From NCBI GenBank assembly GCA_054661495.1, contig BAAFSQ010000081.1, forward strand, positions 6,651 to 38,650: DNA of 32,000 nt, in the 5' to 3' direction. This document shows, in pieces, positions 22,259 through 27,761 of this stretch. Made by a program: the position numbers and the translations under genes. Source of the stretch: Zygophlyctis sp. KS116 (lineage: Eukaryota > Fungi > Chytridiomycota). Within the stretch, counting starts at the first letter, position 1, and each line of letters starts with the position of its first letter. A model generated the notes under the pieces. That model searched no databases and had not been told where the DNA came from. It worked only from the letters and a program-made list of their open reading frames with translations.

Positions 22259-23175
22259 ATGAGATTAATAATACTACTTCAACTCATCAAACTCATTCTA
22301 GCAAAGATTGAATTCTTTACGCCGTTTGGAATGTCAAAGACTAAAAGTATTGAATATGAAATTGGAGAGTCTTCTACAAATTCTGGATCAGGACAAACTA
22401 TTCTATATTTAAAGAGAGGAGGAGTTATGAGAGGTCCAGTTAATGTTTATTTAGTTTTCTATGGACAGAATTGGACACCATCAAGAACATTTAAAATTCA
22501 GAATTTTGTAAAGAATATGCATTCTTCATCATACTTTTCAATTATTAAAAACTATAAAGATGAAGTTGGGAATATTACTGGACCATTAATCTTAAAACAA
22601 AGTATTTGGCAAAGTTATGAATATGGATTAAATTTGGATATGTCCGGAATTATTAAGAATCTCCACAATTTGTATCCAAGAGTAGATCCACAGGGAATTT
22701 ATGCTATTTTATCTGATAATCAGACTTCTATTAGTGTATCTGCACAAATTGAACTTTGTAAGGCTTTTTGTGGATTTCATACAATTGTTGGTCAAAGAAA
22801 AGTAAATTAATAATTTTAATATTATAGATTGTAGTCGTTGGGGATGCATCTATTTGTGGTCAATGTTCACCATTCAGAGATTCTCCAAGTTTAGATAAAA
22901 AAGCAGATGCAATTACTAATATTCTAGCACATGAGATTATTGAAACTCTCTCTAATCCGGACACTTCAAATCCATCATACTTGAATGCAAATAATGAAGA
23001 GGTATTTAATCTCTTTTTTAAAAATTAGAATGCAGATATTTGTAATTTTAATATGGGAAAATCAAATCCTGTAGATGCAAGAGGAAATCGTTATAATGTT
23101 ATCGTTGGACATTTGAAATACTATGTACAATCTTATTGGAGTTTATTGTCAAGTGGATGTTCTATGATGGATTAA
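22259..23175 (+). CDS. Secreted Phi-1/EXORDIUM-like protein; 3 exons
   Basis: Signal peptide; GGVMRGPVNVYLVFYG, FCGFH, ADAITNILAHEIIETLSNP, ENADIC, YNVIVG..KYYVQSYW. Introns 22802-22827 and 23002-23028. Confidence 0.8.
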
Positions 23176-23237
23176 TCAGTTTTTGTATTATAAACAATAA
23201 ATTTAAGTTCAACCAGTAAGACTACTAGAAGCGTTAG

Positions 23238-23309
23238 TATGCATCAGAATATCAACAGATTGTAATCATTTTTCATGTGAAACACGGATAAGAATTCATC
23301 ATTTGCATA
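23238..23309 (-). ncRNA. Box C/D snoRNA U18 (snR18/SNORD18)-like
   Basis: Terminal stem UAUGCA/UGCAUA, box C AUGAUGA (23302-23296), guide UCCGUGUUUCA complementary to LSU rRNA UGAAACACGGA, C'-like AUGAUUA, box D CUGA (23247-23244). Confidence 0.85.
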
Positions 23310-23376
23310 ATCTCATTTCAAAAAAAAACAATTTGGTACAATATAAAAAATCTACAGAGTTAGTGATTATGAGAAA

Positions 23377-23466
23377 CTGATCAGATAGTTTGGTAAGTTT
23401 GTACAGTATCAGCACTTTAGATCAGAAGCAGAACTGGCATGTTTTGTACAGTTATCATCACTTCAG
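23377..23466 (-). ncRNA. Box C/D snoRNA snR61 (U38/SNORD38)-like
   Basis: Box C GUGAUGA (23461-23455). 13-nt guide GCCAGUUCUGCUU before D' CUGA (23425-23422), complementary to LSU AAGCAGAACUGGC; the D+5 rule gives the A equivalent to yeast Am1133. C' GUGCUGA, box D 23384-23381, stem CUGA/UCAG. Confidence 0.9.
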
Positions 23467-23509
23467 AATAAAAACATACCTATTATAATTTAAAGAGAAA
23501 CAATATGTG

Positions 23510-23585
23510 AGAGCATCAGTTGGTGGTGCATGTTATTTATCATCATCATATGTATGTAATAATGGATATCATCATCATTTGCTCT
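23510..23585 (-). ncRNA. Box C/D snoRNA snR55 (U33/SNORD33)-like
   Basis: Stem AGAGCA/UGCUCU, box C AUGAUGA (23578-23572), C' AUGAUGA. 12-nt guide CAUGCACCACCA one nt before box D CUGA (23519-23516), complementary to SSU UGGUGGUGCAUG; D+5 gives the U equivalent to yeast Um1269. Confidence 0.9.
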
Positions 23586-23695
23586 AAACTTTTTGTAAAA
23601 AAAAAGAATAAAAGGCCTTGTCCTGGTACTTGAATACTTGTCTGGACTGCCGCACGATTTAACATGGCGACAATTATGGCGTCCGATTATCTAAA

Positions 23696-25033
23696 ATGGC
23701 TTTTACACTAATCAGTCTCTCATGGTTTGCAACAATCATTATGGCTGCTGGATTTGATATCAATGATGTATCTTCAATAAATATCGCTCATAAGGCTACT
23801 GCTGCAAAGTTGATGTCATATTATCAGCCAAACGATAAGGGAACTATCCCTCCAGTTGAATCTGAAGATGAAAATGGATTTCAATGGTTTGAAATGGGTA
23901 TTTATTGGGGTGCAATCATGGAATATACTAATACTTCATCTGATAAGCAATACTTTAATCTGGCGGGTGCCGCCTTGAGCAATGCATCATTTGGTGGAAA
24001 TCTTTCTTTTATTGGAGGGAAAGTGAATGGAAAATGGTCAGATAATATGCACTGGAATGATGATATTCTATGGTGGGGATTTGGAGGTATTTAAATCATT
24101 TCTAAAAGATTAGTTATTCAAGGGGCTGAAATTGAAGGAGTTGAAAGCAAAATGCAGAATGGCTTAAAGTATCTTGATTTAGCTAAAAATACTTTTGATC
24201 AAGTATTTAGTCAATGGGATGATCAATGTGGAGGAGGTGTTTACTGGGCGAGAAATCGAAATGATGAAAAACAAAATCGAAGATTGTACAAATCAACAAT
24301 TTCAAATGTTCAGACTATAATCTTGGGAGTCCGCTTATATCTATTAACATCAGATTCACAATATCTTGATGCAGCTACCAGAATATATACTTGGCTTAAA
24401 GGACCATCAGGGATAGTAACCCCAGATGGTAAAGTATATGATGGAGTATATGCTCGCTTCTGTGATAAAGTTGAAAAAAAGGAGTTTAGTTACAATTCAG
24501 GATTATTCTTGGGAAGTGCTGCATTACTTTTTAATGCTACAAAGAATCCAGACTTTATTAAAGATGCATCTGTAGTATTCTCCAATTTCCAAAATGTATT
24601 TACAATGAACAATACGGTATTCGATCCCTGTGAAGTCTCAGGAACATGTAAAAAGAATCAACCACAATTCAAAGGAGTAGCAATCAGATTTTTACGATAC
24701 TATTATCAAATATCTGCTGATATTGAAATCCGTAAAAATATTTCTAAAATAATTCAAACTTCGGCAGCATCTCTTTCATCGACTTGCAATGAGGAGGGAC
24801 TCTGCAGTAACTTTTGGCTTCCACAAACATCTGATCGTCCACGAAATGTTCACAATCAAATAAATGCATTGGAGTTGTTGAATGCATTGGTAGTGATCAA
24901 AAGAGGCTATTTGTATGAATTCATGAACTTTCTCAAGAAATATTCAACGACTACTGAAAGAAGCGCCAGTAGCGCTAGTAGCATGTATCTACAGGCCATA
25001 TCTTGGGCTTGGGTGTTGCTATTGCTGGTTTAG
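23696..25033 (+). CDS. Glycoside hydrolase family 76 (Dfg5/Dcw1-like alpha-1,6-mannanase/transglycosidase), secreted, probable GPI signal
   Basis: Signal peptide; catalytic WNDDILWWG; intron 24087-24113; WDDQCGGGVYW, YKSTISN, FSYNSGLFL, FKG; Ser/Thr spacer and hydrophobic C-terminus. Confidence 0.9.
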
Positions 25034-25410: not shown

Positions 25411-27761
25411 TCTTGATACTGATTTAGTAATCGAATCCAAAAATGAATCCACTGGAAGACTAGGAATCTCATTTACTGAAGGCATTCCATTCACTAATGA
25501 TTTATAAATATATAAAATACCTAGAGCTTCCTTCAACTCTTCAATTTTAACAGTAGTAGGTTGTGTGAGTGATTTATTGGATGATCTAAGAGATGCACCA
25601 ATCTTTTTCCAATCGGTATATCCGGGAGATGTATGGCTGATTAAAAGTTTTTTATCTTGTAATTGAGTTAAAAAAAGTTACAATGAGGATCTTCCACAGT
25701 ATTTGGAGAGAAAAATGAAAGTCTAGAGTCAGACTTTAAGAATCTCAGAATAACAGATTTGTCTAAAATGCAAGTCTTGGTCTCCTTGAAGCGATCATCA
25801 CTGATAATTTAATTGGAAAAAATACCTAAATTCGAGTGTCATGCATTTTTCAATCGCAGATCCGCCATTTTCAATTCCATATACCCATAAATTGGAAGCT
25901 ATTCGTTCCTTTTTAATTTCCATAACACTATTATTCATTTCTGATAGCCCCAAAGAGCTCGAGGCATCACACAAGACATTGAGAATGACATTTCCAATAG
26001 AGCTTGCATGAGGGATTGAACCTTCAATAGTTTTATCTTGTAAAACAAGCAAAAACGCTGCAACTCTTCCGAATTCCACAAGTCCAAATACTTGACAAAT
26101 TGAAGCTAGAATAGTTCCACAGATACAAAAGTCTACTGGTTTTACAAACGGTTGGGAAAGACAATCAAGCATTTTTTCTCGTAATTCAACACAAAAGCTA
26201 CTATCAGATTCTGTTGGGTAAGAGCTAAATATAAAATTGTTCAATATCTTACTGTGCGTGGCCAATGTCTAGTTTTAAAGCTTTCTCTATAATTGTGTAT
26301 ACTAACACTCTAATATCTAAAATTATTAATCAACGCAAAATACCTTGGTTTTGATTGTTGTAAAAATTTACACATGGCTTTAAAACTTCATAAGAGATTG
26401 GAGAATGAACAATAATAGTACTTTCCCTCCTACTTAAAGTCCTTTTCTTAAAAAACGGAGAATTTCTAGTATTCAAGAGCGCATTAATGCATTCTAAAAT
26501 AGGAATAGTTGAAGTACACTGATCGAGCTGTTTTGCCAAAAAATTAATCAAGTCATTAAGTTGATTTGGATATGATAATGAAAGAGCAAGATTTCCTATC
26601 TAATAAATAAAATTTACAAGTACCAGTTGAAGAAATTAACAAATGTTGATAATCTTTTTGTAATTTGGCATCTGTTGTATCTAAATTGGATTGTAATTGA
26701 GTCACAAAAACCTCTAATAACTCTAAATTTGCCAATGTTATAACTGCCCCTCCTTGAATTATCAGCTGAGCTATACAAGACACTATTGTAAACTTTGCAT
26801 TAGCTGAAAATTTCTTTTCTGTATCTTGGATTTTCTCTAAAAGACTTGATAACAGAATATATAAGTTTTGTGATTGAGAGCAAGAATTTTGAATTATTTC
26901 AACTACTCTTACTACTAACCAAGTAGACTCCCAGAGTTTATTTTCGTCCAAAAATCTATAGTTATTTAATTGAAAAACGTACAAGAAAATTGTGTTTAAA
27001 AGAGATTTAAAGTAAATTGACTGTACCATACATAAATCCGCTAAACAATCTGCCGATATTGACTCTAATTCACTAGTAATAGTCTCTAATTCATTTTTAC
27101 TATTTGAAATTTTGAATAAATTCATTATAACTGCATGTATCATATAAGTCCCATAAGATTCTAACGCTGTTTTCTTAAAGATTGCATCTGTTGCAGAAAT
27201 CACTCTTAGAGTTTTTAAAGCTGATAATCTATCAGTCATTGAAGTATTTTGATCTTTAATGATTTCTGTATATTTTATAATAATTTTTGAATAAATTTCC
27301 ACTGCATTTCCTCCTAAAGAGTCTCCCTTTGGAAAAAATTCATGAAACAACAAAAACTAGAAAATTAGATTTAAAATACTTACCGTCTGTGTTGCTCTTT
27401 CATGCATCTTGATCATACTACTAGATAATATTTTAAAAACAATTTTGAGAACAGATTTTGAGAATAAATTCAAATTTTGAGCGCAATCCTTGATTAGAGC
27501 ATCTAAAATATGTAGCAAAATGCTTATTCTCCTATAATTTAATTCATAAAATTACGCTATTCTATTTCTATAAAGATCATTTAGGCCCTTGTTTTCCAGG
27601 ACTAATCCAATCTTTGGAAGTTTTTGAGGTTTAGAATTAGCATAAAAAATCAGTAGGGAGAGGGATGAATTGTTTATTATCTCTGATGATTTATTTGATG
27701 GATAGATATTGTGGATCAGGATGAAATGGTTATAGCAAAATGCCCAGCAACTTTCGCCCAT
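25405..27761 (-). CDS. EFR3: EFR3-like scaffold of the plasma-membrane PI4K complex; about 10 exons
   Basis: Cys-bearing N-terminus, LIHNIYP...SSLSLLIFYANSKPQKLPKIGLVLE, ILDALIKDCAQNLNLF, and C-terminal TVKIEELKEAL. Nine introns of about 24-28 nt restore the frame. Confidence 0.82.

Follow-up and report, generated by a model that had tools for sequence, protein, structure and literature searches.

Three snoRNA clusters have been described in fungi, and cluster II among them consists of snR57-snR55-snR61 (PMC3596301). Each of these snoRNAs sits in an intron of a non-coding host in Zygomycota, Basidiomycota and Euascomycetes; S. cerevisiae and its relatives make them from an unspliced polycistron, in which the splice signals have decayed (PMC3596301). 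A cluster lacking snR57 has been reported from Euascomycetes, and internal exon loss has left juxtaposed introns in at least 61 cases, for which EST and RT-PCR data, including those for cluster II of Y. lipolytica and D. hansenii, support stepwise 5'-to-3' removal or the use of alternative acceptors (PMC3596301). For the snoRNA61 host intron of S. pombe an internal zero-length exon was found by spliceosome profiling (bioRxiv 10.1101/226894), and the UHG-like hosts of N. crassa, confirmed by RT-PCR, have been compared with UHG/GAS5 (PMC2780460).

The locus analysed here lies in the window, i.e. the whole stretch of 32,000 nucleotides from Zygophlyctis sp. KS116, and belongs to a 523-nt spacer between a Phi_1-family gene and a GH76 gene, in which we find three box C/D snoRNAs on the minus strand:

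about 23173-23175: stop codon of the Phi_1-family gene, bordering the snoRNA spacer
23585-23510, minus strand: unit 1, box C/D snoRNA of the snR55/SNORD33 family (Rfam and 18S pairing)
23466-23377/23378, minus strand: unit 2, box C/D snoRNA of the snR61 family (Rfam and LSU pairing)
23310-23237, minus strand: unit 3, U18-like paralogue, box C/D (sub-threshold SNORD18 match and rRNA pairing)
23696-25033, plus strand: GH76 gene, ATG at 23696

Each unit contains a C box AUGAUGA or GUGAUGA (RUGAUGA) and a D box CUGA and is closed by a terminal stem (6 bp in unit 1, 4 bp in unit 2 and 6 bp in unit 3), which bears out the original prediction of three minus-strand units with these elements. The spacers between the units measure 43 nt (units 1-2) and 67 nt (units 2-3), and on their common strand unit 1 (snR55) directly precedes unit 2 (snR61). 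An Rfam cmscan, the check proposed with that prediction, returned only two matches at gathering thresholds in the whole window, namely unit 1 as SNORD33/snR55 (RF00133; 51.6 bits, gathering threshold 44) and unit 2 as snR61 (RF00476; 50.0 bits, gathering threshold 45). Unit 3 stayed below: in a permissive scan of positions 22900-24000 (1.1 kb) the best sub-threshold match was SNORD18 (RF00093) at 23307-23240, with 31.3 bits and an E-value of 0.0013 against a gathering threshold of 41. We are practically certain that units 1 and 2 are real snoRNAs, and unit 3 is very probably one, too.

Guide pairing was checked against the genome's own rRNA fragments, i.e. about 75 nt of 18S and 3.3 kb of LSU. 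The rDNA is fragmented in the assembly (12.7 Mb in 1175 contigs): the 18S piece of about 75 nt sits at the end of contig C180 (1-75), which then continues into unrelated sequence, the LSU is found on the 3.3-kb contig C637 (1-3330), and the conserved 18S motif GTGCCAGCAGCCGCGGTAATTCCAGCTC is missing from the assembly. The D guide of unit 1, CAUGCACCACCA, pairs at 12 of 12 positions with 18S TGGTGGTGCATG (L001 59-70) and by the fifth-nucleotide rule points to U62 of this fragment, the Um1269 site in yeast numbering. For unit 2 the D' guide UGCCAGUUCUGCUU forms 14 bp, one of them G-U, with LSU AAGCAGAACTGGCG (L003 855-868) and targets the adenosine of the Am1133 site (yeast numbering). A D-side element of the same unit, CUUACCAAA, is complementary to UUUGGUAAG, which adjoins the D' target in the LSU; its UACCAAA is also kept in the Rfam snR61 consensus, and we read the element as a probable accessory pairing. 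Unit 3 carries a D' guide, UCCGUGUUUCA, that matches LSU TGAAACACGGA (384-394) at 11 of 11 positions, and a second guide at the D box, CAAUCUGUUGAU, that forms 12 bp, including two G-U pairs, with 18S GGAUUGACAGAUUG (L001 23-34) and by the same rule selects the U in GGAUUGACAG. This predicted 18S site is 38 nt upstream of that of unit 1; in N. crassa, Um1227 (snR82/snoR14/HBII-55 family) and Um1265 (snR55) are likewise 38 nt apart (PMC2780460). Thus the rRNA complementarity originally noticed for each unit holds against the organism's own rRNA. The register of the guides is correct in units 1 and 2; in unit 3 it is correct only if the D' box is AUGA or CACA. Altogether the cluster predicts four rRNA methylation sites (target nucleotide in square brackets):

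unit 1, predicted: 18S U of UGG[U]GGUGCAUG
unit 2, predicted: LSU A of AAGC[A]GAACUGG
unit 3, D' guide, predicted: LSU UGA[A]ACACGG or AAAC[A]CGG, depending on the D' box used
unit 3, D guide, predicted: 18S U of GGA[U]UGACAG

The identities first proposed for units 1 (snR55/U33) and 2 (snR61) stand; that of unit 3 has to be narrowed, as the true U18 of this genome is encoded elsewhere. The host gene of U18 in S. cerevisiae is EFB1, and the canonical U18 of the present genome (41.4 bits, gathering threshold 41) is found in an intron of the corresponding gene:

L009 1093-991 (contig C324), minus strand: U18 (SNORD18) in the first intron of EF-1beta, 103 nt

The exons around this intron are in frame (...DKSYIAG / FNASTEDV...), and exon 2 encodes the acidic and GNE domains. 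In the C324 U18, GGUCCGUGUUU is directly followed by CUGA; unit 3 reads UCCGUGUUUCACAUGA and has no canonical D' CUGA directly after GGUCCGUGUUU, but CACAUGA in its place, i.e. three extra bases and a degenerate D' box. Either the degenerate box would act at the U18 site, or AUGA would serve as D' box and direct the guide to the A three positions upstream. Unit 3 shares with the U18 of the EFB1/EF-1beta intron the UCCGUGUUUC guide and the overall layout; unlike it, it scores below threshold, has a shifted or weakened D' box, carries an extra 18S guide and lies outside EF-1beta. It is a U18-like paralogue and not the genome's U18.

To describe the introns of this genome we collected ORF-joining GT..AG candidates in 232 kb, whose length distribution is flat apart from a sharp peak at 25-29 nt. 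A donor PWM (median 6.9) was trained on 77 local GTA-initiated introns of 20-33 nt; these tiny introns mostly start with GTAA or GTAT and show a weak yTAAy about 9-10 nt ahead of TAG or AAG. Around the three snoRNAs the following splice-like elements can be placed, all on the minus strand:

23637 or 23629 to 23480, minus strand: putative intron 1, containing unit 1, with donor GTATTC or GTACCA and acceptor AATAG
23482-23474, minus strand: putative zero-length exon, TAG directly at GTATGT (from sequence signals)
23479-23352, minus strand: putative intron 2, containing unit 2, with GTATGT, CACTAAC (ACTAAC at 23364-23359) and TAG
23351-23340, minus strand: putative 12-nt micro-exon ATTTTTTATATT, deduced from the flanking signals
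23339-23225, minus strand: putative intron 3, containing unit 3, with a weak GTACCA, TACTAAC (ACTAAC at 23238-23233) and TAG

Each snoRNA is flanked by a GTA donor, a yTAAy or ACTAAC branch site and a TAG acceptor, signals that are rare by chance but of uneven quality. With a score of 8.0 the internal donor of intron 2, GTATGTTT (GTATGT), belongs to the top third of the local introns; the intron 1 acceptor (7.6) is at about their median. As for the donor of intron 1, GTATTC at 23637 scores 5.8 and GTACCA at 23629 scores -0.3, lower than all 77 local introns, which makes GTATTC the more likely site; the GTACCA of intron 3 at 23339 reaches 3.6, and just four of the 77 score lower. Hence the GTA and TAG strings with which the original prediction bracketed each unit are present where it had put them, but its GTACCA donors lie at or below the bottom of the genome's donor range.

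Two sequence combinations stand out from the background. The junction TAGGTATGT (TAG/GTATGT) has a single occurrence in a sample of 464,000 strand positions, namely between units 1 and 2; its TAG is the first AG downstream of unit 1. ACTAAC-N3-8-TAG occurs seven times in the 464,000 positions; two of these occurrences fall in the cluster, after units 2 and 3, and three of the five others close bona fide tiny introns. We estimate a probability of about 3e-7 that two of three units would by chance be followed by this motif at a distance of up to 30 nt. Branch site and acceptor are 9-10 nt apart in the cluster, as they are in the local tiny introns, and the TACTAAC of intron 3 touches the terminal stem of unit 3. 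In a position-specific 3' PWM trained on tiny introns the ACTAAC acceptors score low, which we read as a difference in composition between intron types and not as counter-evidence. A genome-wide search for C box...D box...ACTAAC revealed no enrichment (9 matches vs 9 in the control). RNase III-type processing was set aside because the spacers do not fold (no stable hairpins, z-scores from -0.3 to +0.6), and nothing in them resembles an RNase III entry site.

RNA evidence comes from one low-depth contig of 219 nt in a lake-water metatranscriptome (run X1), which matches positions 23393-23613 with 0 mismatches. It is unspliced and colinear across the intron 1/2 boundary TAG/GTATGT, and may accordingly derive from a precursor, from an intron with two snoRNAs or from contaminating DNA; no splicing is visible in it, and it is compatible with splicing, too. 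Over the rest of 22300-24900 there was no RNA coverage beyond this single contig of a single run, and no junctions were seen. The spliced non-coding host of the original prediction is partly supported, by splice signals that are improbable by chance and not by a junction, the sole RNA contig being colinear. The contig also lacks 2 nt at 23548, where CATACATAT forms part of the internal loop of unit 1; this deletion, which touches neither the boxes nor the guide, may reflect natural variation.

Part of the locus exists a second time in the assembly:

L007 1453-1775 (contig C93), minus strand: copy of units 1 and 2 with the putative introns and micro-exon, 98.8% identical

The copy extends from four bases before GTACCA up to the base before unit 3; it does not contain unit 3, and homology stops exactly at the 5' end of this unit. 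It is located directly downstream of a same-strand coding gene and does not include the GTATTC donor. All four differences lie outside the snoRNAs and splice signals, and the TAG/GTATGT junction is unchanged. The micro-exon has 11 nt in the copy versus 12 nt in the window and is therefore under no reading-frame constraint. The copy is too recent for much inference. Beyond this genome, a search of metagenome contigs for the pattern snR55 guide...snR61 guide gave no match. In a collection of 5.8 billion proteins no relative of GH76 (23696-25033) exceeds 57% identity; the nearest ones are encoded on metagenome or Logan contigs, and tandem GH76 copies occur on several of these. Judged by this search, the organism has no close sequenced relative in the collection. 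On the contigs of the closest GH76 homologues (L015-L018, at most 57% identical) none of the guides was found.

The genome does splice long snoRNA introns in coding genes. Two such hosts were checked and both show exon continuity, namely EF-1beta with U18 (103 nt, see above) and SHMT with a snR79-like snoRNA (143 nt):

L040 1503-1361 (contig C17), minus strand: SHMT intron, 143 nt, with a snR79-like C/D snoRNA and a TACTAAA branch site

The genes GH76, EF-1beta, Phi_1 and SHMT were identified by searches with their single exons. The SHMT intron falls between Pfam positions 192 and 191, and the guide of its snoRNA, AGACUACAACGGUAUCUGA, agrees with the snR79 family consensus. These two introns support the long-intron class for snoRNAs that had been proposed from the window. 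An ACTAA branch site is found in four of six snoRNA introns versus four of 77 tiny introns (Fisher p = 5e-4, from a small sample); the EF-1beta/U18 intron has just TTTTAAT. We regard it as doubtful that the snoRNA introns of about 100-160 nt form a mechanistically separate class, recognised by strong ACTAA branch sites like those of yeast and, where the host is non-coding, spliced recursively via zero-length exons; if true, two modes of intron recognition would operate in one very compact genome whose ordinary introns measure about 26 nt and carry a weak yTAAy.

A number of further elements of similar appearance were noted. On C324 (L009 1357-1500, plus strand), divergent from EF-1beta, a C/D candidate lies in a GTAAAA...AACTAAC...TAG cassette of 144 nt; its guide GGCAUUUGGCU matches LSU AGCCAAAUGCC at 11 of 11 positions, and beyond the cassette there are further intron-like units; the promoter region shared with EF-1beta (L009 1240-1290) contains three tandem copies of CGACTGTGCCT. 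On C17 (L035 29-162, minus strand) a 134-nt GTAAGA...AACTAAT...TATAG cassette encloses a C/D candidate with a 7-bp terminal stem in an apparently non-coding host. C15 bears a C/D-like element with a 5-bp terminal stem (L033 3927-4004, plus strand), flanked by GTATTT as possible donor and TTGTAG as acceptor; the available rRNA fragments yielded no target for it. In the window itself, positions 25723-25825 (minus strand) could form a 103-nt GTATTT...CTTAAA...TAG intron with GUGAUGA...CUGA and a stem of just 3 bp, which has no Rfam match. The Rfam family search of the whole genome did not find U14, and 150 kb of other contigs gave no Rfam match at gathering level.

The best reading of the locus is, in our opinion, a non-protein-coding host on the minus strand that probably carries its snoRNAs in introns. 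We infer a single unit of transcription, the splice sites it would use and the pathway by which the snoRNAs would be released. Transcription would start in a divergent promoter region of about 60 nt common to GH76, and each snoRNA would reside in its own spliceosomal intron. With no exon between them, introns 1 and 2 would be spliced out one after the other in the 5'-to-3' direction or via alternative acceptor choice; the 12-nt micro-exon would precede intron 3. After excision and debranching, exonucleases would trim the introns to the ends protected by the snoRNP, giving RNAs of 76, 89-90 and 74 nt, which would guide 2'-O-methylation of an 18S U (unit 1), an LSU A (unit 2) and both an LSU A and an 18S U (unit 3).

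The same three snoRNAs might also be released without any splicing, from a polycistronic precursor through endonuclease cleavage and exonuclease trimming, the splice-like strings being relics of de-intronisation. The colinearity of the RNA contig across the spacer between units 1 and 2 and the weakness of the GTACCA donors would fit this scenario, and S. cerevisiae and its relatives do process the same cluster unspliced after signal decay (PMC3596301). However, the signals at the present locus are intact (GTATGT at 8.0, two perfect ACTAAC at normal distance from TAG), no hairpin suited to RNase III exists in the spacers, and long snoRNA introns are in use elsewhere in the genome; we consider an unspliced polycistron unlikely. 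The strong internal GTATGT, unique in our sample and placed right after TAG, also bears on a composite intron, in which the first donor alone works together with the acceptor at 23480, 23352 or 23225, so that lariats carry one to three snoRNAs and the internal GTATGT and GTACCA are unused as donors. Such an arrangement appears quite improbable given this donor and the real use of an internal zero-length exon shown by spliceosome profiling in S. pombe (bioRxiv 10.1101/226894), even though the donor of intron 3 is weak and the RNA contig, lying within 23629-23352, covers both units, as expected of a lariat or intron with two snoRNAs; in juxtaposed fungal snoRNA introns composite use could not be told from stepwise splicing (PMC3596301).

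Alternatively, the units might be three independently transcribed snoRNA genes, each with an A/T-rich promoter element 20-35 nt upstream. Independent genes are frequent among yeast snoRNAs (PMC2780460), and TATA-like A/T-rich strings precede each unit (e.g. TTTTATATT at unit 3). This reading is hardly credible here, as it leaves the splice signals unexplained, has to fit into spacers of just 43 and 67 nt, and is at odds with an RNA contig that links units 1 and 2 and with the C93 copy, in which both units were moved as one block.

Taken together, an intronic non-coding host remains our preferred interpretation, and the locus most likely is this organism's version of fungal cluster II, made up of snR55, snR61 and a U18-like dual-guide third member. 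Annotation of the seemingly 'empty' spacer would thereby gain three snoRNA genes, a putative non-coding host and a duplicated copy. Dikarya and Rhizopus are known to have the snR55-snR61 linkage and the exon-less junction between the two introns; an organism whose introns are extremely short would now join them. Such a case agrees with the idea that the few long introns owe their length to the snoRNAs they contain and not to limits of splicing, and it raises the modest question of how a spliceosome for tiny introns treats these few long ones. The locus reveals no new kind of mechanism: because intronic clusters in non-coding hosts, including juxtaposed introns, are already documented in fungi (PMC3596301, PMC2780460, bioRxiv 10.1101/226894), the novelty claimed in the original prediction is unsupported.

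Compared with these systems, the locus resembles the cluster II and UHG-like hosts (N. crassa CD34/CD38) in that snR55 is followed by snR61 on one strand, with one snoRNA per putative intron, no coding potential, tiny or absent internal exons and splice signals flanking each snoRNA. It differs from cluster II in that snR57 is missing (no further snoRNA match in 22900-24000, and just 44-52 nt between the donor and unit 1) and the third member is a U18-like snoRNA with a snR82/HBII-55-type 18S guide. Unlike in the cluster II hosts, the ordinary introns here measure about 26 nt, and splicing is predicted from the sequence. The closest parallels to the junction between introns 1 and 2 are the S. 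pombe snoRNA61 host SPNCRNA.445, in which a 3' splice site adjoins a 5' splice site between snoRNA introns, and the 'complex introns' of Candida, Y. lipolytica, D. hansenii and Euascomycetes with their juxtaposed 3' and 5' splice sites; those cases were established by profiling, ESTs or RT-PCR, and ours is predicted from the genomic sequence. With the S. cerevisiae snR57-snR55-snR61 unit it has in common that the same two families are adjacent and probably co-transcribed, but that unit lost its splice signals and is unspliced, whereas here the signals are intact and the spacers free of hairpins. Like mammalian UHG/GAS5, which have much larger introns and exons and an unrelated snoRNA content, it would produce a non-coding transcript with several introns, and the snoRNAs inside these would be its useful output. 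In its predicted layout the locus matches the described fungal arrangement down to the exon-less junction.
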